From the sequence record PP355766.1: a DNA stretch of 64,000 nt, one strand, 5' to 3'. Shown here in pieces: positions 1 through 29,784 of the stretch (its first letter is position 1; every line of letters begins with the position of its first letter). Position numbers and translations under genes: made by a program. Below the pieces are notes generated by a model. It was not told the DNA's origin. It was given only the letters and a program-made list of their open reading frames with translations, and searched no databases.

Positions 1-151
1 CCCTTGTGTCCGAGGATACCTCTAGACGGTCATATCTCTTAGCCCAGAGAGAAACTAGCTTTGGGTGTTTCGGGGTTACTCCTTCTCGGCTCTACTGTTA
101 ACCCTTATTCGAACTACATACCGAGTTATGAGCGTACTCACTAGTTTAAAT

Positions 152-228
152 TGGCGCGGCTAACGGGATTCGAACCCGTGGCTCCGACGTGACAGGCCGG
201 TATGTTGACCGCTGAACACCATAGCCGC
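152..228 (-). tRNA. tRNA-Asp(GUC)
   Basis: Cloverleaf: acceptor GCGGCUA/UAGCCGC, loop CU-GUC-AC, GGUUCGAAUCC T arm, encoded CCA. Confidence 0.95.
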
Positions 229-236
229 TTAATTTG

Positions 237-350
237 TTATTCCGGTTCGTATTCCATTAAGTCGTCTGACTCACAAGTTGGACACTCCCAATGGCATTCA
301 CTTAACTCACCACAATCGGAACAAATGTATAACTTAACTTCATCTTCCAT
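237..350 (-). CDS. 37-aa zinc-ribbon-like microprotein (MEDEVKLYICSDCGELSECHWECPTCESDDLMEYEPE)
   Basis: Below track cutoff; GAGG RBS, directly downstream of promoter 381-409, two CxxC pairs. Confidence 0.7.
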   Translation of the reverse strand: MEDEVKLYICSDCGELSECHWECPTCESDDLMEYEPE

Positions 351-380
351 TTGCTTTTCCTCTTTCGTTTCAATATAAAT

Positions 381-409
381 ATTATACTAAATTTCAGGGT
401 ACTAGGCAA
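381..409 (-). promoter_or_regulatory. T5-type sigma70 early promoter
   Basis: TTGCCT-17-TATAAT with A/T-rich UP element. Confidence 0.8.
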
Positions 410-421
410 ATGAATTTTTCA

Positions 422-637
422 TTAATCGTCTTCTTCGTCCCATGAGAGGGAGTGCATGAAGATCGGTAGAACTGTAGGTTCTACGTCAAGCGACGGGTAG
501 AAGTAAGTTTTACCTTGAGACAGGTCAATGAACGTAGGGGTTCTACCCTCCTGCATGTGTTCATCAACCTTGTCTAGGGCGTCGTTTAACAGTTCGAAGC
601 AGTCAGTATTCGCTCCGCAAACAACGATAAAATCCAT
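422..637 (-). CDS. hypothetical protein (71 aa)
   Basis: ORF coupled to the upstream ORF (stop and start share base 637). Confidence 0.7.
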   Translation of the reverse strand: MDFIVVCGANTDCFELLNDALDKVDEHMQEGRTPTFIDLSQGKTYFYPSLDVEPTVLPIFMHSLSWDEEDD

Positions 638-1011
638 TAACGACCCCCGTTCGGGAAACCGGAGGCAAGCAGGAAGCGAACAACGTCTTCCAGCGACGGG
701 CCTTCTCCATCTTCTTCCAGATGGAAAGGCAGAATAGCGTACTGCATGTCAGCTGGTGCTACCGGGGTGAAGGTAGGCTCTGCGGGAGCTTCTGCCATGA
801 ACACTGCGGTTCCGTCAACCAGACGATCGATCGCTTCACAGACTTCTAGCTGTTCTTCGATCTTGGCCTCGCGTTCGCGCATCAGAGCCAGCAGTTCAGT
901 GCGGTATTCTTCGATACGGCGGTCTAGAGACTCGATGTTATTGGACAGGTTATCCTGTACAATCATCAGGCGGACTACAGCAGAATTTCCATTAGTTGGT
1001 CGTGTAAACAT
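637..1011 (-). CDS. hypothetical coiled-coil protein (124 aa)
   Basis: GAGG RBS; heptad-like E/R/L-rich central region. Confidence 0.75.
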   Translation of the reverse strand: MFTRPTNGNSAVVRLMIVQDNLSNNIESLDRRIEEYRTELLALMREREAKIEEQLEVCEAIDRLVDGTAVFMAEAPAEPTFTPVAPADMQYAILPFHLEEDGEGPSLEDVVRFLLASGFPNGGR

Positions 1012-1031
1012 GATATTTCCTCGATTGATTA

Positions 1032-1304
1032 TTAGATAAAGTCGCCGGTAGAGACTACCAGTTTAATGCTTTTACGGAAGATTTCGTGCATACCGTCGTG
1101 AACCATTACTGTCCCGACCAGTTTTGGAAGGTAGACTTCCACATCAATATTACCATATGGCATGGCGTGCTCGTCAGTAAGTTTAGTCCATAACTCCGGC
1201 TGAAGCTCGCAGTTATAGAACACCATCCATTCATGATCACCATCCCATCCGTCCCAGTTAAGAACCAGTGCGGATTCAATACCTGTTGCAGTAACCTTTG
1301 ACAT
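1032..1304 (-). CDS. hypothetical protein (90 aa)
   Basis: GAGGAG RBS, immediately downstream of promoter 1336-1364. Confidence 0.8.
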   Translation of the reverse strand: MSKVTATGIESALVLNWDGWDGDHEWMVFYNCELQPELWTKLTDEHAMPYGNIDVEVYLPKLVGTVMVHDGMHEIFRKSIKLVVSTGDFI

Positions 1305-1335
1305 TTGCTAACTCCTCTCGTTAATTTATGAATCT

Positions 1336-1364
1336 ATTATAGCAATTATAAGAGCGTTTAGCAA
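1336..1364 (-). promoter_or_regulatory. T5-type early promoter
   Basis: TTGCTA-17-TATAAT followed by AGATTCATAAATT (PN25-like initial transcribed sequence). Confidence 0.85.
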
Positions 1365-1381
1365 ATGAATTTTTGAATTAT

Positions 1382-1535
1382 CCGCTCCGAAGAGCGGTAA
1401 TCCAGGCTTGCAGCTGTTAGTTACACTTGGTTTGAAGTTGTCTAGGACATTAACTAGAGGTTGATGGCCTCCCCGTTTCTGCAACTAACATTTCACAGCT
1501 TCTCGGACGTTTGACGGCCCTGACCGAAGTCTCAC
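1382..1535 (-). ncRNA. candidate structured ncRNA 3' of tRNA-Val
   Basis: 11-bp helix 1415-1425/1480-1490 (G.U wobble on minus strand), internal hairpins, 3' CCGCUC-UUCG-GAGCGG hairpin. Confidence 0.5.
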
Positions 1536-1542
1536 TGTAAAT

Positions 1543-1618
1543 TGGTACTTGCTGCTGGTTTCGAACCAGCTACCCTCGCCGTGTAAAGACGATGCTCTCC
1601 CGATTGAGCTAAGCAAGT
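1543..1618 (-). tRNA. tRNA-Val(UAC)
   Basis: Cloverleaf, loop UU-UAC-AC, CCA. Confidence 0.95.
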
Positions 1619-1621
1619 ATT

Positions 1622-1698
1622 TGGTGGTCAATAGTGGATTCGAACCACTGTAGTCTCACGTATGAAGCGAGTGCATAAACCATCTCTGCCAACTGACC
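1622..1698 (-). tRNA. tRNA with CAU anticodon (Met or lysidine-Ile2)
   Basis: Cloverleaf, loop UU-CAU-AC, A73, CCA. Confidence 0.9.
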
Positions 1699-1703
1699 TT
1701 ATT

Positions 1704-1779
1704 TGGTACTCCGAACTGGACTCGAACCAGTGACCTAACGATTATCGGTCGTTTGCTCTACCAACTGAGCTATCGAAGC
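1704..1779 (-). tRNA. tRNA-Ile(GAU)
   Basis: Cloverleaf, loop CC-GAU-AA (C33), CCA. Confidence 0.9.
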
Positions 1780-1780
1780 A

Positions 1781-1939
1781 TTATTGTTCCTGCTGGCGGA
1801 CGCAGATTTCCTCGTCCGGGTGTATTTTAGCGATCCTAGCGTCTTCCTCGGCTTCATTGTAGGTGTCGTGAAAAGCCGGTGCCAAGAATACAATCTCTTT
1901 TGTGTGGGTATTAATTAGCATACCTTGATAGCGAGTCAT
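1781..1939 (-). CDS. hypothetical protein (52 aa, MTRYQGMLINTHTKEIVF...)
   Basis: ORF fills the gap between the upstream ORF and tRNA-Ile; GAGG RBS. Confidence 0.65.
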   Translation of the reverse strand: MTRYQGMLINTHTKEIVFLAPAFHDTYNEAEEDARIAKIHPDEEICVRQQEQ

Positions 1940-1946
1940 AGTTACC

Positions 1947-2138
1947 TCAACGTTTACCATTACGAGGTGCTCCGGGACGTTTAGCAGCCCTCAACATGGA
2001 GGCTTTAACCTTAGCTATGTTTTCGGGGGTACGGTCGCTAGGTTTTAGCGCGGCTGCACTACACCAGTTTTCGCCTTCCCAAAGGGTATATACTACTATA
2101 TCTGTATTATCGAACTTCTTTTGTGTGAAGTTAAACAT
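1947..2138 (-). CDS. hypothetical protein (63 aa, MFNFTQKKFD...)
   Basis: AGGAG RBS before ATG 2138; the longer track ORF overlaps tRNAs. Confidence 0.7.
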   Translation of the reverse strand: MFNFTQKKFDNTDIVVYTLWEGENWCSAAALKPSDRTPENIAKVKASMLRAAKRPGAPRNGKR

Positions 2139-2153
2139 ACCAGCTCCTAGAAT

Positions 2154-2230
2154 TGGATGCTCCGGCAAGATTCGAACTTGCGATCTCCAGCTTATGAGAC
2201 TGGCGAGGACGGCCTCTCCTCTACGGTGCA
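2154..2230 (-). tRNA. tRNA-Met(CAU), possibly initiator-type
   Basis: Loop CU-CAU-AA, A11-U24 pair, A4.A69 mismatch, U73, CCA. Confidence 0.8.
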
Positions 2231-2232
2231 AT

Positions 2233-2308
2233 TGGCAGGGGCAACAAGAATCGAACTTGTGACCTAAGGCTTCAGAGACCTCCGCTCTACCTACTGAGCT
2301 ATACCCCA
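2233..2308 (-). tRNA. tRNA-Gln(CUG)
   Basis: Loop CU-CUG-AA, U1.U72, G73, CCA. Confidence 0.9.
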
Positions 2309-2318
2309 ATTATGCGCA

Positions 2319-2431
2319 CTCTGCTGAGTACAACGTTGTGTCTAGGGCCAGAACATAAATGCTTGCATTTATGGGAGGCGGCTAGAAGAGGGATGTGACC
2401 CAGAGGGCTAACCTCGTCACTCCCAGCAGAG
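2319..2431 (-). ncRNA. candidate structured ncRNA between tRNA-Arg and tRNA-Gln
   Basis: Closing helix CUCUGCUG/CAGCAGAG; inner GUGAC/GUCAC and CAUAAAUG-CAAG-CAUUUAUG hairpins. Confidence 0.55.
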
Positions 2432-2437
2432 ATTTTA

Positions 2438-2512
2438 TGGTACACCATCGAGGAATCGAACCTCAACCATAGAGTTCGTAGCTCTATATTCTATCCATTA
2501 AACTAATGGTGC
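2438..2512 (-). tRNA. tRNA-Arg(ACG)
   Basis: Cloverleaf, loop CU-ACG-AA, CCA. Confidence 0.95.
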
Positions 2513-2519
2513 AGTAATC

Positions 2520-2596
2520 TGGAGGGATATCTTGGATTCGAACCAAGATAGACTCGATCCACAATCGAGGTCATTATCCAGTTATGATAATATCCC
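2520..2596 (-). tRNA. tRNA-His(GUG)
   Basis: Loop UU-GUG-GA, acceptor GGGAUAU/AUAUCCC, U73, CCA. Confidence 0.9.
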
Positions 2597-2599
2597 AAA

Positions 2600-2742
2600 T
2601 TTGAGCACCATCGAGGGCTGATCAGACCTCCACAGATAGAGTGCACATCGCACACATTATCCGGTTAGACCGCGTATTGGTACGTTGCACTTCGTGCAGC
2701 ATATTAATCCAATATGCGACTCATCGAACGATGATGCTCAAA
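2600..2742 (-). ncRNA. candidate ~143-nt rod-like ncRNA
   Basis: 14-bp terminal helix UUUGAGCAUCAUCG/CGAUGGUGCUCAAA with one U.G wobble, nested inner helices. Confidence 0.6.
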
Positions 2743-2744
2743 TT

Positions 2745-2845
2745 TGGTGGCCCTAAGAAACTCTTCCCACTCACAACTAGTTGATTACTTCTGGATTTTC
2801 GCCCAGAAAATTCTCTAGAAAGGGGCAACCGTTACTCGTCGGGCC
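2745..2845 (-). ncRNA. CCA-ended tRNA-like RNA lacking a normal anticodon or T loop
   Basis: Acceptor-like GGCCCGA/UAGGGCC followed by A-CCA; inner UUCUGG/CCAGAA hairpin. Confidence 0.6.
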
Positions 2846-2851
2846 ATTATT

Positions 2852-2939
2852 TGGAGGAAGATAATGGAGTCGAACCATCACCGATTGCTCAGTGGGCTGG
2901 TTTTCAAGACCAGTTGCGTACCACTACGCCCTATCTTCC
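2852..2939 (-). tRNA. tRNA-Ser(UGA)
   Basis: Loop CU-UGA-AA, long variable arm, CCA. Confidence 0.95.
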
Positions 2940-2946
2940 AATTATT

Positions 2947-3033
2947 TGGTAGGGATGGAGGGGGTCGAACCCACACGGATATTTCACCACTAGAACCTAA
3001 ATCTAGCGCGGCTGCCAATTTCGCCACATCCCC
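2947..3033 (-). tRNA. tRNA-Leu(UAG)
   Basis: Loop UU-UAG-GU, long variable arm, CCA. Confidence 0.95.
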
Positions 3034-3038
3034 ATTTA

Positions 3039-3200
3039 TTAGTTTTCTTTGATCAGACTTTTAATCTTCTCAAAGTTTTGGTCAGAAATACAGATACCTT
3101 CCAGGGCAAAAGAGGCTCTAGAACTTTCTAATACCATGTCTACCACAGCATCAAAATTTTCCTCTCTAAAGAAGTTTTCGCTTTCATTTGCCTTTTCCAT
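3039..3200 (-). CDS. 53-aa VbhA-like (Fic-inhibitor motif) microprotein
   Basis: MEKANESENFFREENFDAVVDMVLESSRASFALEGICISDQNFEKIKSLIKEN; SFALEG fits (S/T)xxxE(G/N); AGGGG RBS. Confidence 0.65.
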   Translation of the reverse strand: MEKANESENFFREENFDAVVDMVLESSRASFALEGICISDQNFEKIKSLIKEN

Positions 3201-3219
3201 ACGTACCCCTAACTTTAAT

Positions 3220-3298
3220 TGGTGGAGTCACAGAGATTCGAACTCTGCTGCTATCCTCGGTGCAAGCGAGGTGTCCACTCCTAGCAGACCCTGACCCC
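3220..3298 (-). tRNA. tRNA-Ala(UGC)
   Basis: Loop CU-UGC-AC, G3.U70, CCA. Confidence 0.95.
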
Positions 3299-3316
3299 AA
3301 TAATTTGTTAAGGCAA

Positions 3317-3501
3317 TTAATCCGGTGCGCGTAATACCCTGAGCAATTAGCCATGCAAGGATACCCGCTCTTCACAAATACGATACACTCTACGCTTACC
3401 AGGCGTTTCGGAGAGCCACTCCGCTATTCTTGCAAACCCTCAGTTCAATTACCGAGCAAGCTGCAAGCGTGTTTTTTGGTTCCGGCTCTGTATCAGATTA
3501 A
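3317..3501 (-). ncRNA. candidate structured leader or ncRNA (~185 nt)
   Basis: No credible ORF; closing UUAAUCUG/CCGGAUUAA, nested GAUACA/UGUAUC, AGAGCC/GGCUCU and CUUGCA/UGCAAG helices. Confidence 0.45.
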
Positions 3502-3523
3502 TTCCTTAACAAACTATATAAAT

Positions 3524-3552
3524 ATTATATCAATTTGTTAAGCATTTAGCAA
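3524..3552 (-). promoter_or_regulatory. T5-type early promoter
   Basis: TTGCTA-17-TATAAT. Confidence 0.85.
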
Positions 3553-3571
3553 CTGAATTTTTCAGTAAATT

Positions 3572-3648
3572 TGGTACTCCCGACGGGGTTCGAACCCGTG
3601 TTCCCACTGTGAAAGAGTGGTGTCCTAACCAGCTTAGACGACAGGAGC
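3572..3648 (-). tRNA. tRNA-Glu(UUC)
   Basis: Loop CU-UUC-AC, CCA. Confidence 0.95.
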
Positions 3649-3658
3649 ATTTTAAATT

Positions 3659-3734
3659 TGGCAAGGGAAGGAGGAGTTGAACCTACCGATCTCGGAGTCA
3701 AAGGCCGATGCCGTAACCACTTGGCTATTCCCTT
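3659..3734 (-). tRNA. tRNA-Gln(UUG)
   Basis: Loop CU-UUG-AC, G73, CCA. Confidence 0.9.
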
Positions 3735-3745
3735 TCAATATAAAT

Positions 3746-3774
3746 ATTATCTCAAATTCTAAAGCATTTAGCAA
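3746..3774 (-). promoter_or_regulatory. T5-type early promoter
   Basis: TTGCTA-17-GATAAT directly upstream of tRNA-Gln. Confidence 0.75.
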
Positions 3775-3828
3775 TTGAATTTTTCAAGTATTTTGGTAGT
3801 GACCCGGCAACGCAGGTCACTATGCAAA

Positions 3829-4323
3829 CTACTCGCCGTGGTCTACACGAATGAGCGGACAAAGTTTGTCCTTCTTGTAGATTCGCATCTTTTGGTAGAT
3901 GTTACCGAAGCGAAGCTCTTCATCGCGAGCATTATACTCTTTCTGTGCCCTTTCAAAGGATTTACTCGCGTTCCATTCCTGGATCCGATCCCCTATCTTA
4001 GCGCAGGCCCAGCCGATCCCAGTTATCGCCAGCAGAATCGCTACTATCGTAGATAGTCCTGCTAGACTTAACCCTACAAGCATGTACCAGGGAGTAATTC
4101 CCAGCTCAAAGGTGAGGCCCAAGAACGTAGATAAGATACTTCCCATCCCCAAGGAGAAGAGTACAGCAATAGCAGTTACGCCAATCTGTAGCAGGAAATA
4201 CCACACTGAGTGCCAAAATAGGCTACACAAGGTGACTCTGTTGTCGTTCAGCCGATAGGTGAAAGACGCGGAAGAGAAATTAAGCCACTTGTAGAAAAAA
4301 CCTTTACGTTTAATATTCAGCAT
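3829..4323 (-). CDS. membrane protein (164 aa)
   Basis: Two long hydrophobic segments. Confidence 0.8.
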   Translation of the reverse strand: MLNIKRKGFFYKWLNFSSASFTYRLNDNRVTLCSLFWHSVWYFLLQIGVTAIAVLFSLGMGSILSTFLGLTFELGITPWYMLVGLSLAGLSTIVAILLAITGIGWACAKIGDRIQEWNASKSFERAQKEYNARDEELRFGNIYQKMRIYKKDKLCPLIRVDHGE

Positions 4324-4333
4324 ATTTAGCCTA

Positions 4334-4543
4334 TTACTTGAGTTGATTGATTAGGAAAACTTGTAGCGCGATAATGAATGCGGCATAGGAGTCAGAGCCT
4401 TTACCACCTTCGTTCTCATTAACTTCTTTTAGTAGGGCTTCAAAAGCTGCTTTGTGACGCTCATAGTGCCCTCTAACTGTCGGGCCAGCATCCTCTAACA
4501 TGCCTAAAAGCATATAGTACTGGGTTTGTAATTGGGCGTCCAT
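4334..4543 (-). CDS. hypothetical protein (69 aa, MDAQLQTQYY...)
   Basis: TAATG coupling with the upstream ORF. Confidence 0.75.
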   Translation of the reverse strand: MDAQLQTQYYMLLGMLEDAGPTVRGHYERHKAAFEALLKEVNENEGGKGSDSYAAFIIALQVFLINQLK

Positions 4544-4740
4544 TAGTCCTCCCACACGATTTTAATCGAGAGAAGACGATTTACAGGAATGACCAGCATA
4601 GTCTCAGACCGTTTATTAAGGATTTCCAGGATATCCCCATCACGATGGAGCAGACGTTTAGGACTGATATCTGTTACTGTGGACTCTAGGACGATACCAC
4701 TGTCATCCACGAAGGATACGATTGCGTTTTTAGTAGACAT
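4543..4740 (-). CDS. hypothetical protein (65 aa)
   Basis: AGGAG RBS after the tRNA. Confidence 0.75.
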   Translation of the reverse strand: MSTKNAIVSFVDDSGIVLESTVTDISPKRLLHRDGDILEILNKRSETMLVIPVNRLLSIKIVWED

Positions 4741-4761
4741 TTTAGTCTCCTGTTATGAAAT

Positions 4762-4839
4762 TGGTGGCTCCCGGAGGATTCGAACCTGCCTACCTTCCGC
4801 TTATGAGGCGGGTGCTCATACCCAATGAGCTTGAGAACC
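4762..4839 (-). tRNA. tRNA with CAU anticodon (elongator Met or Ile2)
   Basis: Loop CU-CAU-AA, A73, CCA. Confidence 0.9.
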
Positions 4840-4843
4840 TGAG

Positions 4844-4863
4844 AAGGGCTATTTCTAGCCCTT
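4844..4863 (-). terminator. hairpin (terminator or processing site)
   Basis: AAGGGCUA-GAAA-UAGCCCUU between the ORF and the tRNA. Confidence 0.45.
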
Positions 4864-4869
4864 AGTTAT

Positions 4870-5163
4870 TTATACTGCTGCTTCATCTTCCGGGGTGCCT
4901 TCCACCGGAGGTTCTTCAGTAGGGGTATCCTCTACCGGAGTGTCTTCAGTTGGAGCATCTTCAACCGGCTCAGGATCTTTCACGAAGCCTGCTTCTTCAT
5001 CGGAGATCACATACAGATCCTGAATATCCTCTGTATTGATCATACGAGCTACGCTACCATCTTTATAGAAGACGGATTTAGTGCCCTCGTTGCGAGCCAT
5101 GTTCGCATCGATAATCAGCTCAGTGAGAACCCCTTTCTTTAAATATTCAATTTTGTAAGCCAT
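4870..5163 (-). CDS. hypothetical protein with acidic Pro/Glu/Asp/Thr 5-aa repeats
   Basis: GAGG RBS; PVEDA-PTEDT-PVEDT-PTEEP-PVEGT tail. Confidence 0.8.
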   Translation of the reverse strand: MAYKIEYLKKGVLTELIIDANMARNEGTKSVFYKDGSVARMINTEDIQDLYVISDEEAGFVKDPEPVEDAPTEDTPVEDTPTEEPPVEGTPEDEAAV

Positions 5164-5197
5164 TTTATCCTCTACTTTCTCTTTGATTTAAAGAACT

Positions 5198-5226
5198 ATT
5201 ATACAAAATTTCTGACAAAATTGCAA
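5198..5226 (-). promoter_or_regulatory. T5-type early promoter
   Basis: TTGCAA-17-TATAAT. Confidence 0.85.
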
Positions 5227-5314
5227 GAAAAATTTTGTAGAATCAATCTCAGTCTGCGCCCTGCGGGCTTTTTACCGCTGCCCACTAAATATTACGTGTG
5301 GGCAGCGATTAAAG

Positions 5315-5390
5315 TGGTACTCCCTACAGGATTCGAACCTGTGACCCACGGTTTAGAAGACCGTTGCTCTATCCTCTGAGCTAAGGAAGC
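5315..5390 (-). tRNA. tRNA-Arg(UCU)
   Basis: Loop CU-UCU-AA, CCA. Confidence 0.95.
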
Positions 5391-5391
5391 A

Positions 5392-5556
5392 TTAATAAAG
5401 TTTAAGTGTTTTGACAACCAGATCATGAACCTGTTCAGAATACCGGCCAACGCTCTTATGCAGCGACTCCTTAAATTCTAGAGTACGTCTAGCGATTAGC
5501 TGCTTCTGTTCAGGTGTCAGATTCGGTGGTGGACGTTCATAAGGTGGTGTACGCAT
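5392..5556 (-). CDS. hypothetical protein (54 aa, MRTPPYERPPPNLTPEQKQ...)
   Basis: AGGAG RBS; ends 1 nt before tRNA-Arg. Confidence 0.7.
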   Translation of the reverse strand: MRTPPYERPPPNLTPEQKQLIARRTLEFKESLHKSVGRYSEQVHDLVVKTLKLY

Positions 5557-5569
5557 GTTGGTCTCCTAA

Positions 5570-6320
5570 GTATCTTTAAGAACTCTCGTGAAAGCTCTTA
5601 AAGATACCGCCAGTAGGTAGGGGCCTTCCCCTGTTTAAGCTATGCGGCCCTTCTGTCAGACGTATCTTCCAGTTATAGTCAAGGTGACTAATATACCTTG
5701 CCAGATCCCGGCCAACGGATATCCGTCGGCTAATGCGGTCTAGGCGAGGGCACACTCCAAACAGGGGCACTTCTAGCCTGTGTAAGGGTGCTATAAATAG
5801 TGGTTATGCTTTCGCTCGGGGTGACTCCGGTCATGACTCCATTGTCACATGCTTACACAGGGTATACGAGCTTCCGCGGAGCTGTATACTCAGCCGTGTC
5901 CCACTTAGGTCTCGGAGCGACCGTTTGTACGAACGGTTATCCGAATACTCTTTCCCACTTAGAGTCAGGCGAGATCCCACCTCGCCAAAGTTCATACGAT
6001 CATCATGCCGTATTTAAGGACTAGTTTTGGCACTTCTGGAGAGCCATCCTCCACGCGGTCTGTTAAAATCACACCTCCGAATTTTCGATGTGAAGTTCGG
6101 CTATCTCTAGCCATCCAGCGTATGGTCGCTTCGCACCTGCCACTCTTACGTTCAAATCGGTTTAGGCGGTGGCAGCCCTCCGAAGTTCCGAGTTTGGTTG
6201 AGGCCGTCAGGTTTCCTCGTGGTTTAGCTGTTTCGTTCCCGCGAGTCTCCTAAGTCTTTCCCTAGGAGGGGAGGAGGTACTCCAGCAGCGAGTGGTTCGC
6301 CAATAGAACCATCAGTTATC
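5570..6320 (-). ncRNA. candidate large multi-helix ncRNA (~700-750 nt)
   Basis: No credible ORF; more than ten helices including perfect 5777-5786/5852-5861 and 5628-5636/5759-5767; wobbles favour the minus strand. Confidence 0.65.
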
Positions 6321-6327
6321 TAGCTCT

Positions 6328-6413
6328 TTCCGACCGCAGGATTCGAACCTGCACTTTCCGCATCTGGGGATAGCTCCCCGCGTGCAGAAGTCTACCAATT
6401 AACTTAGGACGGC
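6328..6413 (-). ncRNA. tRNA-like element with anticodon arm replaced by an extended hairpin
   Basis: D arm AGUU-AAUUGGUA-GACU, T arm GCAGG-UUCGAAU-CCUGC, central UUCUGCA/UGCGGAA plus GGGGA-GCUA-UCCCC, no CCA. Confidence 0.7.
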
Positions 6414-6419
6414 AGTGTT

Positions 6420-6840
6420 GCTACATAAGTGATTTCGACACCCCACTATGGTGGCAATAACCAGCACCAGACGCTATACACATGTCTCCAATTTGCAGCC
6501 TAGGCAGGTCAGTGTGGGAGCTATACGAGTTTCTCAGGCTCAGCCCCCACCTCTCCGGCAGGCCACGCACCATGCTTCATTCTGGTCGAACAAGTTAAAG
6601 TGAGATTCCACCATTTTCTATAAATCAGGAGAAGAGTTTACGAGGCTACGGGACAGCTCCCGAGTTTTACAAGAGATCTCTAACCTACGCCCGTCCAATA
6701 CGCTCCCTGGCCGGTATCCGGACTGGATGCACGAACTTTGTTAGGTGATCACTCTTAACTCACCGATTCTATTCAACGAATCTTAATGCTCGACGAGTCT
6801 TACATTAAAACAAGTTCAGCGTAATCGGCCCGCTGTTCTC
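6420..6840 (-). ncRNA. candidate structured ncRNA (~400 nt) at the 5' end of the transcript
   Basis: Starts just after promoter 6857-6885; multibranch 5' domain and a long nested rod (6514-6522/6542-6550). Confidence 0.55.
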
Positions 6841-6856
6841 TCTAATTTATGAAACT

Positions 6857-6885
6857 ATTATATCAACTTTTTAAGCATTAGGCAA
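6857..6885 (-). promoter_or_regulatory. T5-type promoter driving the non-coding locus
   Basis: TTGCCT-17-TATAAT overlapping the hydrolase stop; not followed by an RBS/ORF. Confidence 0.8.
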
Positions 6886-7332
6886 CTGAGATTTTAATTT
6901 ATAGAACACATGGTTGCCAATTTTACTTGTTCTTTTGAAGTCCTTGTCTTTTGTCCAGTAAGGTTTAGTATCTTTACTGTGAAAGTACAAAGCTCCCTTC
7001 GTCGGATCTACTGGAAGATCCATATAGTAAACTAGTCTAGCTATCTCTTTAGCTTGTTTCCACTCTTCGTCTTTACGATCGAGTTTATGTTTCTTTTTAC
7101 CAACCCAGCTGAACTGCCCTGGTTGATAGACTACTTTACAATATGTGGACGGGAATTTTCCATAGTTAACACGATTTTTCGTTACTTGTGCAACTGCGGT
7201 CATTCCTTTAACTCCTTCCCCTCTAGCTTCAAAGTACGCATTTTTAGCTATGCACTCTATCTCATGCGCATCAATCTTTGCCTGCGCATGGAAACTAGTG
7301 AGGATGGAGATCATTAGAATGGCTGCTTTCAT
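6871..7332 (-). CDS. SleB/Hydrolase_2-type cell wall hydrolase with signal peptide
   Basis: YFEARGE, VAQVTKNRV, QFSW, GALYFH and IGNHVFY motifs. Confidence 0.9.
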   Translation of the reverse strand: MKAAILMISILTSFHAQAKIDAHEIECIAKNAYFEARGEGVKGMTAVAQVTKNRVNYGKFPSTYCKVVYQPGQFSWVGKKKHKLDRKDEEWKQAKEIARLVYYMDLPVDPTKGALYFHSKDTKPYWTKDKDFKRTSKIGNHVFYKLKSQLPNA

Positions 7333-7365
7333 TATTTCTCCTTTACTCTTTGATTCAAGAATAAT

Positions 7366-7395
7366 AGTATATCAAGAAATCAGCCATTTAGTCAA
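7366..7395 (-). promoter_or_regulatory. sigma70 promoter
   Basis: TTGACT-18-TATACT. Confidence 0.6.
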
Positions 7396-7396
7396 A

Positions 7397-8401
7397 TCAA
7401 ATTTTCAATTTCGATTCGATAGTTTTAATACAGTACGCTTCTACCAGGGCGTCAAACACCGGATCATGTTTCGACGGGTAGACTCCCTCAGGAATCAGGT
7501 TGTAACGCTCGATTACGTCATGTGCGTATACTTCAGCACAGCGTACCAATGCTTTCCAGTCTCCTCCGAGAGCCTCAAAATAGTCACGCGGGTTACGGGC
7601 GCTAGAAATATCCCAAAACTTCCACGGAACGATCGCAGGGTCAGATGGGGAGAAGATGTTAGCCTGAGCTGCCACTGTTTCGTAGATGGACATGTCGAAC
7701 TGCGGGCCATTACCATAGTGGCGCAGAGAACGAGTGTCAATGCCCTGCTCGTCGATAATACCTTCGATTACCTGTTTTGCCTCTACGAACGGGCAGATCA
7801 GATCCATGAACGTATGCTTGGATACAGGTGATTCATGGGTCGGATTGCAAACTAGAACGGTAGACTCACCGTCTTTAGCGTTCAGGGCTTCAATAATGGA
7901 CAGTGACGGGGCACTACCAGCACGGGCCTCATTCATCCAGAATGCAATAGTTCCGGCGGACACTTTAGCACCTAGGGCCAACTGCTGGGCCACATTAGGG
8001 GTGCCTAAAACGATATACGGGTCTAGCGACAGATCTTTCAGCAGTACAAAAGCGAAAGACGGCATAGCGATAAAGGTGCTCTTGCAGTCTCCCGGAGTTC
8101 CCAGAGATTCGATATCGCAAACAGAGATCCAGCGGTCTTGTAAGTTTTGCATATTGTTTCCTTTGTTATTAAAGTTGCTTCTAGATGTGCTACCACATTT
8201 AGAAGCCACCTCCGGTGGTGGCTTAGTCATATCTTCGGACACATCCCAGTTTTCTTCCATAGACGGCCAGTCAGCCGCCCAATCTTCGAGTTCTTCGTAG
8301 CACGAATCCATCAGTTCCCGGGAGTTGACCCTAGAGTAATCTAGGGCCGACTTATGTGTCGCTGCACGATTGAAATCGTTTTTAGCTACAAAATTTCGCA
8401 T
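7397..8401 (-). CDS. DEDDh 3'-5' exonuclease (domain starts at internal ATG 8152), in frame with an upstream ~83-aa ORF
   Basis: CDIES (ExoI), GNGPQFD (ExoII), HDPVFDA (ExoIII); AAGGA RBS before 8152. Confidence 0.8.
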   Translation of the reverse strand: MRNFVAKNDFNRAATHKSALDYSRVNSRELMDSCYEELEDWAADWPSMEENWDVSEDMTKPPPEVASKCGSTSRSNFNNKGNNMQNLQDRWISVCDIESLGTPGDCKSTFIAMPSFAFVLLKDLSLDPYIVLGTPNVAQQLALGAKVSAGTIAFWMNEARAGSAPSLSIIEALNAKDGESTVLVCNPTHESPVSKHTFMDLICPFVEAKQVIEGIIDEQGIDTRSLRHYGNGPQFDMSIYETVAAQANIFSPSDPAIVPWKFWDISSARNPRDYFEALGGDWKALVRCAEVYAHDVIERYNLIPEGVYPSKHDPVFDALVEAYCIKTIESKLKI

Positions 8402-8811
8402 TATGCCTTCTTAGCGGGTTTGCGTTTTTGATTACGAGGCTTGTTTGCCTTGCCCGTAAATTTAATACCTACGCCGTAGCACAGGGCGCGAACATTCTCA
8501 CGGCTGTACTCGCAGCCAAAGATATTCGGCTTGACGCTACCGAAACGGCCCTGGGTCTTGCGCAGGACTTCTTTGGTGTCCGCCTTATCCGGCGTACTCC
8601 AGCCAACGATCTTCGAGACGTAGCCAGAGGTAGAACCCTTAGTTACCGGCTTTTTACGACGCGGGGCCGGTTTGCTTACAGCTGATGCTGCTTGAGTATC
8701 AGCCGGATGTTTACGCAGATGACGCTCCAGACGTGCTTTGCGATTCTCTTCAGTTTTAGGAAAAGTTGCAACTTTGGTTTCTACTGCTTTTTTAGAGGTC
8801 TGCTTAGCCAT
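8401..8811 (-). CDS. highly basic hypothetical protein (136 aa)
   Basis: K/R-rich; AAAGGA RBS; downstream of promoter 8857-8885. Confidence 0.8.
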   Translation of the reverse strand: MAKQTSKKAVETKVATFPKTEENRKARLERHLRKHPADTQAASAVSKPAPRRKKPVTKGSTSGYVSKIVGWSTPDKADTKEVLRKTQGRFGSVKPNIFGCEYSRENVRALCYGVGIKFTGKANKPRNQKRKPAKKA

Positions 8812-8856
8812 GATTTATTTCCTTTGTTTTGATTGGTTTCGTTAATTTATGGATCT

Positions 8857-8885
8857 ATTATACGTTAATTTTTAGCGTTTAGCAA
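8857..8885 (-). promoter_or_regulatory. T5-type early promoter
   Basis: TTGCTA-17-TATAAT. Confidence 0.85.
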
Positions 8886-9215
8886 CTGCGTTTTTTCATT
8901 TTCATCTACAAGCTCATCGAAGATGATGTACTCGTACCTATTACCGCCCGATGTGCTTCGCTTGCTCTTCCGAGCTGATGTACTGGTACCCGCCTTTGTT
9001 GTACGCTGGTGCTGTACAGAGTTTCTTTCGCTCAATTTCTTTAAGAGCGGCTCGTTCTCTTTCAGCCATCTCAGGATCCAGGATTTCCCGTGCCTGCGGT
9101 CTTGGTGGTAGACGCGTAGAGGGTTCCCCGATTTTGACGCTTCCAGAAACGCGGCGTAGAGATCGAGCTGGTACTGTGGTACGTTTGGGAACAAATCCCT
9201 CAAATCTGGTGCCAT
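8865..9215 (-). CDS. hypothetical protein (116 aa) with RRHGKS and YIIFDE motifs
   Basis: TAATG-coupled to the ORF 9215-9376. Confidence 0.65.
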   Translation of the reverse strand: MAPDLRDLFPNVPQYQLDLYAAFLEASKSGNPLRVYHQDRRHGKSWILRWLKENEPLLKKLSERNSVQHQRTTKAGTSTSARKSKRSTSGGNRYEYIIFDELVDENEKTQLLNAKN

Positions 9216-9225
9216 TATAATTCAT
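8941..9225 (-). CDS. overlapping alternative-frame ORF (~94 aa) ending APAYNKGGYQYIS...
   Basis: GAGG RBS upstream of ATG 9225; C-terminal motif resembles small phage proteins (from recall). Confidence 0.45.
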   Translation of the reverse strand: MNYNGTRFEGFVPKRTTVPARSLRRVSGSVKIGEPSTRLPPRPQAREILDPEMAERERAALKEIERKKLCTAPAYNKGGYQYISSEEQAKHIGR

Positions 9226-9376
9226 CTCCACCCCTCAGAGCTTTCCACTCCGCTTCAAAGATTTGGGCTTCCATACGTGCGATTCGCAGTTTCATTACTA
9301 CTCGATCCACTCCAGGCTCCATCAGGAGCACTTCATATTTCATTTCGCTAACTAAGCGGCGTAAATTCTCTAACAT
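9215..9376 (-). CDS. hypothetical protein (53 aa, MLENLRRLVSEMK...)
   Basis: TGATG coupling with rnh and TAATG coupling downstream. Confidence 0.75.
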   Translation of the reverse strand: MLENLRRLVSEMKYEVLLMEPGVDRVVMKLRIARMEAQIFEAEWKALRGGDEL

Positions 9377-9858
9377 CACATATCCTCCATTTCTAGCTCG
9401 GTCATGCGAACATTTAGCAGGTTATCTGCGGCCTCATTACCTTCTACACCGGAGTGGCCCTTAACCTTAACGAAAGTTGGGATCTCATTATGGTTGAGAC
9501 GATACTTCTTGAGTTCGTCAATAATCCACTTCCACTGGTCTAAGTTCAGAGGTGTATCACCATCTGCCTTCTTCCAGCCTTTACGTTCCCAGCCCCAAAC
9601 CCAGGACTCACAACCATTCTTAACGTAGGTTGAGTCCAGATAGATTGTCATTGGTCGGCCAGGATTTTTGTTAGACCATAGCAGAGCCTCTAGGACTGCT
9701 TGAAGCTCCATCTCGTTGTTAGTTGTGTTGCGTTTGGGAGCAGACTTGGTTCCGATTTGCTCTTCGCTGGAGTTGTAAACTACCATAGCCCAAGCACCAA
9801 CATTGTCTACCCCACGGGTATTACCGCGGCAACCACCATCAGTATAAACATGAAACAT
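9376..9858 (-). CDS. rnh: ribonuclease HI
   Basis: YTDGGC, TNNEMEL, YLDS, VKGHSG..GNEAAD. Confidence 0.97.
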   Translation of the reverse strand: MFHVYTDGGCRGNTRGVDNVGAWAMVVYNSSEEQIGTKSAPKRNTTNNEMELQAVLEALLWSNKNPGRPMTIYLDSTYVKNGCESWVWGWERKGWKKADGDTPLNLDQWKWIIDELKKYRLNHNEIPTFVKVKGHSGVEGNEAADNLLNVRMTELEMEDM

Positions 9859-10133
9859 TATGCGTGCCCCCAGGAAATGGTAATTGATTCAGTATCACGT
9901 TGGTCAAACGGATGGTTTACTTTTACTTCATAGCCCGCGTCCTTTAGGTCTTCCATAATCTGAGACCGTGCGGCGATAGGCAGACCATTCAATGCGTAAG
10001 AATCTACTTCTGTTTTACCTGAGGAAGCTGATCCATCAATATTTGATATAATAGATCTGCGAGCTGCTATAACTGCCATATCGTTAGACCTTTTGGCTTT
10101 AGCTGCCATTGCTTTTGCATCAGTAAAAGACAT
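9858..10133 (-). CDS. hypothetical protein (91 aa)
   Basis: GAGGA RBS 7 nt before ATG 10133. Confidence 0.8.
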   Translation of the reverse strand: MSFTDAKAMAAKAKRSNDMAVIAARRSIISNIDGSASSGKTEVDSYALNGLPIAARSQIMEDLKDAGYEVKVNHPFDQRDTESITISWGHA

Positions 10134-10163
10134 ATTCATTTCCTCTCTCAAATTTATGAATCT

Positions 10164-10192
10164 ATTATATTAAAAATTCACGTGGTTTGCAA
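10164..10192 (-). promoter_or_regulatory. T5-type early promoter (PN25-like)
   Basis: TTGCAA-17-TATAAT then AGATTCATAAATTTGAGAGAGGA. Confidence 0.9.
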
Positions 10193-10207
10193 ATGAATTT
10201 TTAATAT

Positions 10208-10227
10208 AAGTGGCCCGAAGGCCACCT
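10208..10227 (-). terminator. UUCG hairpin terminator
   Basis: GUGGCC-UUCG-GGCCAC after the ORF stop. Confidence 0.6.
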
Positions 10228-10230
10228 TAG

Positions 10231-10464
10231 TTATAGTAATTTAGCTGGAGGAACTAGTAAATTACTGTTATAGTCCCGCTTGGCTGGAGGGTTTTCTTTA
10301 GGCGGTTTAGGGGCAAACTGACGCATTAGTGCGTCCATGCCCTTGTATTTTACCATCCCTAGGATAACATCTATGTGTAATCCCGAGGATTGAACCAGAA
10401 ACTTCAGCTGAGACTCCTCCCTTTCGGAGAAGGTTATTTTGGGGCGTCTGTTAAATAATCCCAT
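10231..10464 (-). CDS. hypothetical protein (77 aa)
   Basis: GAGG RBS following thyA. Confidence 0.75.
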   Translation of the reverse strand: MGLFNRRPKITFSEREESQLKFLVQSSGLHIDVILGMVKYKGMDALMRQFAPKPPKENPPAKRDYNSNLLVPPAKLL

Positions 10465-10470
10465 AAGTCC

Positions 10471-11325
10471 TCACGCAGTGAACGGATAAGCAATAGGGTC
10501 ATGAGACTTATAGCCCACGATTTTAAAGTCGTCCTTAGAAACCCAGGTGAGTACATCCTCTAGGGTTTTGATTTCCGGGTTGATCTCTAGACGAGGGGCC
10601 GGGAAAGGCTTGCGATCGAATTGGCCATGTTCCATGAGAACCTTGTACTGATTCTCGTAGATGTGCATATTTACTATACGTTGGTTTGCTCGGATTGCCC
10701 GGTTCCCGGTGATCTGGGCCATAAGCGCAAGAAACGTGTAGCATTGGACCATGTTAAAGGCTTGTCCCAGTAGGAAGTCATTGGATCTCTGGAAGGAGTC
10801 GAGATACAGATTTCCATTGAGTAGCGAGAACTGGTGGGTATGCATGCACGGTCGTAAGCATCCTTGATCAAATTCGCCAGGGTTCCAGAAGGTGAGAATC
10901 TCTCCGCGGTCATCAATGCCTCGTCGTAAATTCTCATAGATCTTATAGAGTTGGTCAAAGTGGGAACCATCCGGTCGAAGCCACGTTCTGCCCTGTACTC
11001 CATAGACTCTACCCATATCGTCGGTTCCCTTTCTGTTAGGGTTGACCAACCACGCCTCGTTTTCGTTGGCGTTAGCGTTCCACGTATTGCAGCCGATAGC
11101 ACGGAATTGCTCTGCGGAATCATATCCTCGCAGATATCCGATAAGTTCCATGATGGCCTGAAGAGCGTATGCTTTACGGGTCGTGATAAGTGGGAATTTC
11201 TTTCCGAGTACATCATATTCAAAGTTTGACCCTATTACGGTTAAACAACGAACCCCCGTTCGAGGGTTCTCCAGCCAGACACCTTCTTCGAGAATGCGTT
11301 TGCCTTCATTAATATAGTGAATCAC
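10471..11325 (-). CDS. thyA: thymidylate synthase
   Basis: [26 protein letters not shown]. Confidence 0.97.
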
Positions 11326-11885
11326 AGATAGACTCCTTCCATAACAAAACGATAGCGCTCATTTTCCCCTGAAGCTATATGAGTTACTACAGCATCCGGA
11401 GGAGTGGACGTAAGTATCGGGTGTTCCAGATACATGATGTGGTCTAGGCTTGGTACTGTACCGGCCTTAGGATAAATGGTGGAGCGATAAATCGCATCCA
11501 GACAGCCCATAGTTGCTAGGGTTTCTAGTAGAGCTTTCCCTCCTATGCAGACTACCTCAACTTCATTACAGAAGTCCCGAATTTTGGAACCCAAGTGGGT
11601 AATAAACCGCACATTACGAGGAGGGTTTTTTATCAGAATTGGAGATACCGAACCTACTACGTACACCATAGATTTTTTCTCCAGTGCCTTTTTCAGTCGA
11701 GGAGGGGCCGTTGTGTAGGTATTATGGCCAACGATAACAACCTGATAGGTATCCAGGATTTTGTAGAACTGCTCAAGCTCCTCGGGGATGGAGCCCCAGG
11801 GAAGTTCCCCGTAGGCATCCATCGTAACAGGATTAAAAGTACCGAAGGCGGCGTCTACTCTCATTGCGTATAAAGCGGTAATCAT
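11322..11885 (-). CDS. frd: dihydrofolate reductase (divergent)
   Basis: [20 protein letters not shown] and CIGG motifs; adjacent to thyA. Confidence 0.85.
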
Positions 11886-13045
11886 TACAGGAACTCTCCA
11901 AATTCATCAGACAGATCGTCCGGGTTAGCCTGAGAGGTTGCACCAACACGATAGTTGGTAATCTGTGCTTCTTGCGGAGCTACTTGCTGGTTCTTGGTGT
12001 TCAGCCAACCTTTCATCCAGCCAATCGGGTCTTCCATAATTACCGGGAGATCTTCCGGCCACGGAATGTTGATCGCCATAAATGCCAGGCGTGCGTTGTA
12101 GTACAGGTACTCTACCAGCAAATCGGCGTTCAGGCCTGGAATATCTTCGCCTTCCGGGAAAATATAATGCGCCCAGTTAATTTCTGTCTCCAGAATACTG
12201 CGCAGGATCTTCGGGGCGTTAGCCTGAGCTGCTGCCACTACATGTGGGGGAATTTCCCCATTTTGAAGAATACGGAGAACTTCCATAGCCATAACGGTAT
12301 GGAGTGCCTCATCTTTAGCGATCAGCTGTAAGTTCTTTGCAATACCGGTTAGGATATCGTTTTCTGCCAGAGCAAAGGTGCACGCAAACGACGCGTAGAA
12401 CATAATGGCTTCTAGAGCGTATACAGCGTAGTAGAACTCCAGAATCTTCTGCTGTACTTGTTCAGTAAGTGCTAAGAAGTCTGCCTCTTCGGTGTATTCC
12501 AGAGTACCTTCCTTCTCAGCGATTTCCAGATTGGCTCTAGCGTCCAGCCAAATGTCGGCAATTTCGGCCAACTCATCAATAACAGAAACCGGCAGTGCTA
12601 GACGTGCGAATGCTTCGTCGTTAGCCTGTACGGTTGCAATGAACTCACCCGGATTAGGGAGAACGTTACGAATAATGTTGGAATACGCACGGCTATGAAT
12701 ATTCTCAAAGTAGCTCCACTGAATAAGCATACCTTCCAGTTCAGGGCGAGATACCAGTTTCAGAATGGCATCTTCCGGAGCACGGGTGATAATGGAGTCG
12801 GCTTGGGTTTGCCAGGCTAAGTTCAGCAGGGTTTTGTTTTTAATATGTTGTGGCAGATTAGGCCATTGTTTCTTATCGGCTTCCAGGGAGATCTCAGTCT
12901 CAACCCAGAACTGCGAGCGTTGCAGTAATGCAAGTTCCTCTAAACGAGGATAGCGAACGTTTACATAGTCGGCGATTCCCAGGTCTTGGCCCAGGAATAG
13001 TTTAGACTCAGTGTGATCCCATTCGCGGTTAAATACTGTTGCCAT
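11885..13045 (-). CDS. nrdB: class Ia ribonucleotide reductase beta subunit
   Basis: ENIHSRAY, EAIMFYASF and DEALH diiron motifs. Confidence 0.97.
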   Translation of the reverse strand: MATVFNREWDHTESKLFLGQDLGIADYVNVRYPRLEELALLQRSQFWVETEISLEADKKQWPNLPQHIKNKTLLNLAWQTQADSIITRAPEDAILKLVSRPELEGMLIQWSYFENIHSRAYSNIIRNVLPNPGEFIATVQANDEAFARLALPVSVIDELAEIADIWLDARANLEIAEKEGTLEYTEEADFLALTEQVQQKILEFYYAVYALEAIMFYASFACTFALAENDILTGIAKNLQLIAKDEALHTVMAMEVLRILQNGEIPPHVVAAAQANAPKILRSILETEINWAHYIFPEGEDIPGLNADLLVEYLYYNARLAFMAINIPWPEDLPVIMEDPIGWMKGWLNTKNQQVAPQEAQITNYRVGATSQANPDDLSDEFGEFL

Positions 13046-29738: not shown

Positions 29739-29751
29739 TTGATTTGACCTG

Positions 29752-29784
29752 AGGGGAGAGGAATTTTGTTCCTCTCCCCTTTTT
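29752..29784 (+). terminator. rho-independent terminator
   Basis: AGGGGAGAGGAA-TTTTG-TTCCTCTCCCCT-TTTT. Confidence 0.9.

Follow-up and report, generated by a model that had tools for sequence, protein, structure and literature searches.

The minus strand of a stretch of 64,000 nucleotides (nt) from sequence record PP355766.1 (the window) very probably carries, at positions 6850-5570, the Sugarlandvirus orthologue of RNAX of phage T5, that is, a large, multi-domain, structured non-coding RNA with a strong T5-type sigma-70 promoter, forming one unit with tRNA-Arg(UCU). The window is from a T5-like phage of Klebsiella that belongs to the genus Sugarlandvirus; at 5400-6900 the window shows 100% identity to PP355766.1 and 94-98% to Sugarland and its relatives, and its minus strand carries the local genes, including 15 tRNA genes at 152-5390. 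An initial annotation had flagged 5570-6320 as a candidate RNA of ~700 nt and of a possibly new class. This size has to be corrected, as the structured unit extends over ~1.28 kilobases (kb), from a start at ~6850 to the end of a terminal hairpin at 5570, and includes a tRNA-derived module outside the flagged interval. The interval represents the 3' 60% of the unit, and its limit at 6320 falls inside a conserved helix, P1, splitting the 5' strand from the 3' strand. The extent of the unit follows from its promoter and terminal hairpin, which map onto T5, and from a scan that found no terminator-like sites in 5000-7500. Concerning novelty, no Rfam model exists, but the locus had been annotated before: the window RNA is an expanded member of RNAX, which is known from the records of T5 and DT571/2.

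In T5 (NC_005859), RNAX is a misc_RNA of 719 nt (40848-41566; rnaX, T5s08) described as "RNAX, stable RNA with unknown functions", and its immediate neighbors are promoter P16-17 on one side and tRNA-Arg on the other. The T5 tRNA region has eight "stable RNA" features, of which RNAX is the largest; the other seven, of 73-172 nt, give zero blastn matches to the window. By blastn, nucleotides 28-159 of RNAX align with window positions 6449-6304 (73%, E = 7e-18) and its last 41 nt (677-717) align with 5607-5567 (90%). In addition to sequence homology, the window element has structural modules in common with T5 RNAX that are kept through compensatory change, namely P1, P2, the AGUCAUGA loop, the AGUCA/UGACU hairpin, a three-way junction and the terminal hairpin, and its position is the same, with an early promoter of T5 type before it and tRNA-Arg(UCU) after it on the tRNA strand. 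In order of transcription, the features of the region, including open reading frames (ORFs) with their lengths in amino acids (aa) and helices with their lengths in base pairs (bp), are as follows.

6885-6857, minus strand: sigma-70 promoter of T5 type (TTGCCT, 17-nt spacer, TGnTATAAT), from a promoter scan and the family alignment
6850-6615, minus strand: 5' domain I, several hairpins within a closing helix, e.g., CCGG/CCGG and CGGGA/UCCCG
6614-6450, minus strand: 5' domain II, another branched set of stems, found in Sugarlandvirus and in some Epseptimavirus but missing in T5
6449-6434, minus strand: core 5' motif AUAGUGGGGUGUCGAA, without variation in 21 sequences
6433-6420, minus strand: 5' strand of helix P1 (AUCACUUAUGUAGC), pairing with 6324-6311
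6413-6329, minus strand: tRNA-derived module enclosed by P1, with acceptor-like stem, D arm and T arm, the arms covarying
6324-6311, minus strand: 3' strand of helix P1 (GCUAGAUAACUGAU), inside which the flagged interval starts
6310-6294, minus strand: hairpin P2, GGUUC-UAUUGGC-GAACC, with two of five pairs compensatory and none broken
6289-6227, minus strand: putative stem P3 of variable length (GCUG...CAGC), from alignments
6225-6218, minus strand: conserved motif AAACCACG, of which CCACG (6222-6218) pairs with CGUGG (6055-6051) to form helix P4
6175-6099, minus strand: three local hairpins, CUGCCAC/GUGGCAG (6175-6137), AGCG/CGCU and GGCUA/UAGCC (6112-6099)
6093-6069, minus strand: block E hairpin, UCACAUC-GAAAAUUCGGA-GGUGUGA, a block 91% conserved
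5986-5862, minus strand: genus-specific middle, three hairpins and two copies of CUAAGUGGGA (5962-5953 and 5908-5899)
5848-5821, minus strand: hairpin H-x, GUGAC..UGG-AGUCAUGA-CCG..GUCAC, with an invariant 8-nt apical loop (5838-5831)
5815-5797, minus strand: mini-hairpin GC-GAAA-GC (5815-5808), in the window a GNRA-capped 2-bp stem, and conserved AUAACCACUAU
5796-5690, minus strand: expansion segment of ~107 nt, Sugarlandvirus-only, absent from Markadamsvirinae
5689-5666, minus strand: hairpin H-b, AGUCA-CCU-UGACU (5689-5677), and motif UAUAACUGGAA, conserved in 21 sequences
5655-5611, minus strand: three-way junction of outer helix CAGAAGG/CCUACUG, a small hairpin, a CUUAAA junction and hairpin GGGG-AAGG-CCCC
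5607-5570, minus strand: terminal hairpin of 17 bp with a 4-nt loop, one copy in the window
5556-5392, minus strand: 54-aa ORF downstream of the terminal hairpin, preceded by AGGAG
5390-5315, minus strand: tRNA-Arg(UCU), downstream of the 54-aa ORF

The 751 nt of the flagged interval fold on the minus strand to -260.9 kcal/mol, compared with -231.2 +/- 5.5 kcal/mol for dinucleotide shuffles (z = -5.4, none of 20 as good). This agrees with the initial proposal of a large structured non-coding RNA adjoining the tRNAs, and the GC content is indeed above that of the flanks, as had been noted then (0.49-0.565 over 5600-6700 vs. 0.33-0.39 in 5000-5300 and 6800-7100). The plus strand also outfolds its shuffles (z = -4.5), as would any set of inverted repeats, including one that acts at the level of DNA as a replication origin, a nick site or an endonuclease target. 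However, such a DNA element is extremely improbable, since paired columns contain nine times as many G.U as A.C and scores of the sense strand are far above those of its complement, an asymmetry that cruciforms would not tolerate. In the 5' domains, there are 171 G.U cells vs. 19 A.C cells, and the alifold energy amounts to -168.8 for the sense strand vs. -140.4 for the antisense strand. The G.U excess, together with the model scores given below, indicates that the minus strand is the functional one and argues for pairing of RNA rather than of DNA.

The base-paired architecture is preserved by compensatory change, and this is the case on the minus strand only. As a control, paired cells were compared with slid partners, and pairs changed on both sides were counted as compensated. 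In the domain comprising P1, the tRNA-like module and P2 (6448-6218; RNAalifold, 21 distinct sequences), 98.8% of cells are paired vs. 31-39% with slid partners, and 14 pairs are changed on both sides vs. 0-1, which none of 500 shuffles equals. The two 5' domains, taken jointly (6850-6450; RNAalifold, 13 sequences), form 119 pairs in which 92.6% of cells are paired vs. 34-45% and 37 pairs are changed on both sides vs. 7-15. For the 3' domain (5689-5570), the respective values are 94.7% vs. 38-51% and 10 vs. 2-3, obtained with an alignment fitted to a covariance model (R1) that was itself built from the proposed structure, which favors the result. In a MAFFT and RNAalifold alignment of the 3' domain, the three-way junction was missed, lineages being one column out of register, and realignment to the covariance model corrected this. 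With R1, all homologues reach 103-133 bits on the sense strand, as opposed to 22-36 bits on the antisense strand, where the model meets a palindromic hairpin; the window reaches 125.6 bits on the minus and 31 bits on the plus strand, T5 reaches 103.1 bits, and the Pectobacterium phage DU_PP_V, which was outside the seed, is retrieved with 52 bits (E = 1e-9). In the middle region (6225-5850), alignment across genera by MAFFT and RNAalifold was unreliable, and per-lineage folds and within-genus counts were used instead.

The region might also be regarded as non-functional debris, i.e., tRNA genes in decay and scars left by recombination in a mosaic with many homing endonucleases, its similarity between phages merely reflecting recent common descent. 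A degenerate tRNA inside the element, mosaic variation with block replacement and HNH genes nearby are what one would expect from such debris. Yet this explanation is very unlikely given that 93-99% of cells stay paired via compensation across lineages that are down to 70% identical or unalignable, that loop motifs are invariant over three lineages and that the promoter is conserved.

A blastn search with the region matches 526 phage records, nearly all of them T5-like and from Salmonella, Escherichia, Klebsiella, Yersinia and similar hosts, and part of the element is matched in ~525 records of T5-like phages; with the DU_PP_V region as query, 527 records are obtained. These matches, along with the strong compensatory base-pair evidence, bear out the conservation in T5-like phages that had been suggested initially. 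The layout of promoter, long unannotated stretch and tRNA-Arg(UCU) recurs in Epseptimavirus, Tequintavirus, phiR2-01 (Yersinia) and DU_PP_V (Mccorquodalevirinae), and an equivalent layout is found in Sugarland, Eps7, S116 and others. The family spans hundreds of enterobacterial T5-like phages from the Markadamsvirinae, the Mccorquodalevirinae and Sugarlandvirus. When metagenomes were scanned with a 16-nt pattern, mostly chance matches were obtained, with one true homologue among the matches listed. This homologue, on the human-gut metagenome contig OXIW01000459 (L146; coverage ~251), is a mosaic RNAX in which Tequintavirus-like 5' and middle parts are joined to a three-way junction of Sugarland-b type, indicating that modules are exchanged between genera. 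A pattern search of IMG/VR with GGAGTCATGACC..AACCAC yielded mostly known isolates again, plus chance matches. In the IMG/VR genome 3300017766_004476 (L026, positions 1-120; a contig of 112.7 kb), a perfect 7-bp hairpin with the AGUCAUGA loop is followed by AACCAC and, 6 nt further on, by a long-arm tRNA, the locus being cut 24 nt upstream; this hairpin may be a distant relative of the AGUCAUGA module in an uncultured phage of T5-like size.

No conserved ORF is encoded in the region. Among eight aligned Sugarlandvirus sequences that are 75-98% identical, no ORF is kept in all eight, plus-strand ORFs survive solely where the sequence is invariant, and indels of 1, 2, 5, 7, and 26 nt occur; nor do ORFs of the region match Pfam or PHROGs, so that the absence of a credible ORF, as first reported, holds. 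GenBank records nevertheless treat the region as coding for small proteins (e.g., gp139, gp140, and gp141 of Sugarland), and in favor of this there are the hypothetical coding sequences of several records and a 106-aa minus-strand ORF that is present in three relatives and annotated in some records. In the window and four other relatives, this ORF is cut short, and the annotations clash, with 0-6 "hypothetical proteins" on either strand (e.g., NC_042093, PQ657803, and PV402694) and several pipelines leaving the region blank; a protein-coding role is therefore extremely unlikely. Labels of the tRNA-like piece vary with the record as well, from Pro, Ser and Sec to Undet and OTHER. In PV402694, one "tRNA-Ser" feature covers 7.7 kb.

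Helix P1 consists of 12 bp, six of which are changed on both sides and none of which is broken in the 21 sequences, and DU_PP_V adds three further compensatory pairs. Two 1x1 mismatches, C.C and G.G, occur in all 21 sequences; in DU_PP_V, C.C is replaced by A-U whereas G.G stays. The conserved mismatches of P1 are possible recognition features. The acceptor-like stem of the module enclosed by P1, GCCGUCC/GGUCGG, includes a U.U that is present in most members, and the T arm of the module contains GGUUCGAAUCC. The anticodon arm gives way to a long hairpin in the window, while relatives have a short stem with a 6-nt GUAACU loop at this position. At 6413-6329 in the window, no tRNA is called by ARAGORN or by the Rfam tRNA model; homologues reach 38.3 bits (T5 and DU_PP_V), 29.7 and 26.4 bits with the tRNA model (cut-off 29). 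As CCA is not encoded, the identities assigned by ARAGORN clash between phages (Ser-ACU, Leu-UAG, Ser-CGA, and SeC-UCA) and the anticodon position is occupied by a 6-nt loop or a long hairpin, the module is tRNA-derived but unable to decode.

Upstream of P1, the closing helix of domain I pairs the 5' end AUAAAUUAGAGAGAA (~6850-6834) with UUCUC..CUGAUUUAU (~6636-6620), and T5 retains just this closing hairpin. In three loci (L014 and L015, at ~1975-2045, and L019), an extra ~80 nt precede the core motif and open with a partial copy of it, AGUGGGUAGCGUAAU. Downstream of P1, the stem of P2 reads GGUUC/GAACC, GCUUC/GAAGC, GCUUA/UAAGC or GCUUU/AAAGC depending on the lineage, and P3 is elsewhere represented by a short GGCAG/CUGCC hairpin or by a different long insert. 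P4 has a length of 5 bp in the window and extends to 8 bp (CACGCGGU/ACCGCGUG) in phage bastian, and in DU_PP_V it reads CCGU/ACGG. The hairpins of 6175-6099 are common to phiR2-01, with UUGCCAC/GUGGCAG and a compensatory GGUUA/UAACC for GGCUA/UAGCC, and are replaced in some Sugarlandviruses. In block E, Epseptimavirus and phiR2-01 have UCGCAUC/GGUGCGA, an exchange of A-U for G-C.

All helices, the six local hairpins and the repeats of the initial annotation, including the 10-mer CUAAGUGGGA, are present on the minus strand where it had placed them. The middle hairpins are GGCGAGGU/AUCUCGCC (5986-5968) and ACCGUU/AACGGU (5937-5920), each with one compensatory pair within the genus, and GUAUAC..AGCU-CCGCGGA-AGCU..GUAUAC (5889-5862), a CGCG-loop hairpin to which ACAGGUAAUU-CGCGAU-AAUUCCUGU corresponds in Epseptimavirus and T5; AGUGGGAAA is common to the whole family. 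Of the two long-range helices proposed, CCCCUGUUU (5767-5759)/AAACAGGGG (5636-5628) is contradicted, because two of its pairs are broken without compensation in four of eight relatives and the AAACAGGGG strand belongs to the conserved three-way junction. The other, CCUGUGUAAG (5861-5852)/CUUACACAGG (5786-5777), is invariant in the eight Sugarlandvirus sequences and its segment is matched in Klebsiella phages only (79 records), so that comparison speaks neither for nor against it. Its 3' strand lies in the expansion segment, along with CCCCUGUUU and the hairpin GCCGACGG/CCGUUGGC, in which G.U is changed to A-U and G-C to G.U; a shorter alternative version of this segment exists in the loci L013-L015 and L035.

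The loop AGUCAUGA, which contains the palindrome UCAUGA, is apical in nearly every member in spite of differing stems (AGGCU/AGCCU, AGGU/ACCU, and UAAAC/GUUUA), and H-x is left unclosed by the default fold of DU_PP_V. The adjacent mini-hairpin is longer and covaries elsewhere (GUUCUUC/GGAGAAC vs. GUUCUCC/GGAGGAC, GUCCU/AGGAC, and CACU/AGUG). H-b has the family form AGUCA-CCY-UGACU and is duplicated in T5, where the AGUCACCUUGAC-UAAACUGGAA module occurs in tandem (L005, 2078-2165) with an AU-rich hairpin between the copies. In the three-way junction, five of the seven outer pairs are changed on both sides in the model-based alignment, CUUAAA of the window is CUUAAU elsewhere, and T5, Epseptimavirus and phiR2-01 have an equivalent three-way architecture made from other sequences. 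The terminal hairpin lies at 5570-5607 as first described, with 17 instead of 16 pairs; C-G in the window corresponds to U-A in Tequintavirus, and three G.U pairs are conserved. In T5, it is located at the 3' terminus of RNAX, with five bases between it and tRNA-Arg. The hairpin was also considered as an intrinsic terminator, which was rejected as the stem is A+U-rich and UUAGGAG without a U tract follows, and as a repeated element, which was rejected as it occurs once in the window.

A pairing that would enclose ~650 nt of the element is supported as a candidate between AUAGUGG (6449-6443) and CCACUAU (5803-5797), with 7 bp in the window, 9 bp in locus L014 and 6 bp in T5 and phiR2-01. In DU_PP_V it appears as UUACGG/CCGUGA, altered on both sides, with two compensatory pairs. 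AUAGUGG has an alternative partner, AAACCAC (6225-6219), and as this motif and CGUGG change likewise in DU_PP_V, the covariation fits a serial pairing scheme equally well. A possible, though less probable, alternative to a single large RNA is a polycistronic precursor from which RNase P, RNase III or RNase E would release separate small stable RNAs (the hairpin set of domain I, the tRNA-like RNA cut out of P1, and the 3' domain). A precursor is compatible with much of the evidence presented so far. Every well-supported long helix (the 5' end helix, P1, and P4) closes a local domain, P1 is similar to the leader-trailer stems that flank rRNAs, and domains have been gained, lost and swapped independently among lineages. 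Also, RNase P could cut at the tRNA-like module, which is at the tRNA cut-off in T5 and DU_PP_V, and the small products would resemble the stable RNAs of the T4 tRNA cluster and the other T5 stable RNAs, seven of which are annotated at 73-172 nt. In contrast, the T5 record shows a single RNA of 719 nt, a module order that is conserved over three lineages suggests that the modules work jointly, and the candidate pairing of 6449-6443 with 5803-5797 would enclose ~650 nt.

The ORF-free stretch reaches from the 54-aa ORF to the endolysin gene (7332-6871). By blastn, block 6900-6837 resembles the annotated T5 promoters P16-17 and P-D/E33. The minus-strand unit is predicted to be transcribed from the promoter at 6885-6857, with a predicted start at ~6850, and the annotated start of T5 RNAX maps to 6843. 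In Sugarlandvirus, the endolysin gene directly adjoins this promoter, while in T5 the YqeY-like gene T5.081 and T5.082 separate the endolysin gene from RNAX; a connection between RNAX and the YqeY-like gene was considered and rejected, as homologues of T5.081 and T5.082 are absent from window 1-64000. At the other end, the slot after the terminal hairpin (5557-5569 in the window) is without the 108-aa gene (gp142 of Sugarland, PHROG 18988) that separates the RNA from the small ORF in all seven other Sugarlandvirus loci. TrudiRoth, S124, and 26175IV have a 510-nt ORF in this slot, annotated as hypothetical and possibly a homing-endonuclease gene, and in T5 the slot is empty; it looks like an insertion hot spot. 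The record PP355766.1 ("Klebsiella phage vB_Kpn_AM_K4") comprises 288,685 bp, compared with ~106-123 kb for Sugarlandvirus genomes, and may be a concatenate or a mis-assembly.

The element always immediately precedes tRNA-Arg(UCU), in the same orientation and with no terminator between, which might suggest that it is a giant cis-acting leader that controls processing, stability or timing of this tRNA and of the small Sugarlandvirus ORFs and has no action in trans. In the window, the terminal hairpin even abuts the Shine-Dalgarno sequence of the 54-aa ORF. We consider such a leader unlikely, as 0.7-1.3 kb of conserved structure with invariant apical loops far exceed the needs of known tRNA leaders and as the RNA is kept where HNH genes or ORFs have been inserted between it and the tRNA.

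Several points weigh against a single large RNA of the RNAX family. The stretch 6051-5690 (~360 nt) is restricted to Klebsiella phages (79 records) at identities of at least 90%, which places most of its helices beyond covariation testing, and motifs found family-wide sit inside this same stretch. The covariation signal is carried by ~21 sequences from roughly seven lineages, and the 3' alignment is model-fitted. In S116/Eps7-type phages, an unrelated hairpin replaces the tRNA-like module while P1 is retained, which counts against tRNA mimicry as a universal core function. The label "stable RNA" rests solely on the GenBank note for T5. Finally, any helix uniting all domains is putative at best, and the supported candidate pairing, 6449-6443/5803-5797, has an alternative partner.

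The Sugarlandvirus element would act as RNA, with the conserved loops and the tRNA-like handle as working surfaces and the variable stems as scaffold. One tentative model is a tRNA-mimicking decoy or scaffold that would bind a tRNA-directed factor of host or phage, either a processing enzyme or a defense nuclease. This model is preferred because the tRNA region of T5-like phages counters tRNA-cleaving defenses (PMC11555353, PMC11464382). Viable T5 deletions (30661-38625 and 29191-32442) end short of RNAX (PMC11464382). The palindromic AGUCAUGA loop could permit loop-loop dimerization, and it is the sole hint toward homo-oligomeric assembly. A bolder and equally tentative proposal is that RNAX represents an unrecognized class of large ornate phage RNAs (0.7-1.3 kb) that would operate as a higher-order machine, either as a self-assembling particle nucleated by AGUCAUGA or as a tRNA-mimicking anti-defense decoy.

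In the searchable literature and in Rfam, we found no structure, family model, distribution or role for RNAX, and it appears that its definition as a family, its architecture with covariation support and the tRNA-derived module within the P1 clamp have not been described before. Intricate conserved folds are known from only a few large RNAs of bacteria and phages, and these (GOLLD, ROOL, OLE, and raiA) have recently yielded unexpected structures. RNAX is present in the classic model phage T5 and ~525 sequenced relatives, which are in use for phage therapy and biocontrol, and defining the family would tidy up mis-annotations, both the hypothetical proteins and the odd tRNAs (Pro, Ser, Sec, or "OTHER"). 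T5 on E. coli K-12 offers a genetically tractable system for studying the role of a large phage RNA adjacent to tRNAs.

Among known systems, an analogy to GOLLD and ROOL had been drawn in the initial annotation. Both RNAs form cages. The analogy stands with regard to context, a phage RNA beside tRNAs, but not with regard to covariance models: in the Rfam check that had been set beforehand (cmscan, E up to 1, window 1-12000 and six homologous loci), only tRNAs were detected and no match to GOLLD, ROOL, tmRNA, RNase P RNA or group I/II introns. ARAGORN calls no tmRNA in the window either. Species 1 and 2, small stable RNAs from the tRNA gene cluster of T4, are by description similar to the window RNA, being phage-encoded and co-transcribed with tRNAs, but are much smaller (~120-140 nt). 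In rRNA operons, leader-trailer stems are long helices in which the two flanks of an embedded structured RNA pair with each other. P1 resembles them by analogy, but has merely 12 bp with two conserved mismatches. GOLLD and ROOL are large (>500 nt), intricately folded non-coding RNAs of phages and prophages that are located beside tRNA genes (PMC12286853). The window RNA is like them in size and context only, with no shared motifs seen, and differs in belonging to phages of Enterobacterales. With tRNAs and with RNA1, RNA2, and RNA3 of T5 ("tRNA-like stable RNA"), the module at 6413-6329 shares the acceptor, D and T arms and the GGUUCGAAUCC T loop. In contrast to a tRNA, it does not form an above-cut-off cloverleaf with a 7-nt anticodon loop, has no CCA and is embedded, within P1, in a much larger RNA. 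With T5 RNAX, finally, the window RNA shares the tRNA strand, the slot between a P16-17-type promoter and tRNA-Arg(UCU), and homology in the tRNA-like region and the 3' domain. It differs in its length (~1.28 kb vs. 719 nt), in two extra 5' domains, a genus-specific expansion of ~107 nt and the replacement of other hairpins, in the long hairpin at the position of the anticodon arm, and in the 54-aa ORF that separates the RNA from the tRNA.

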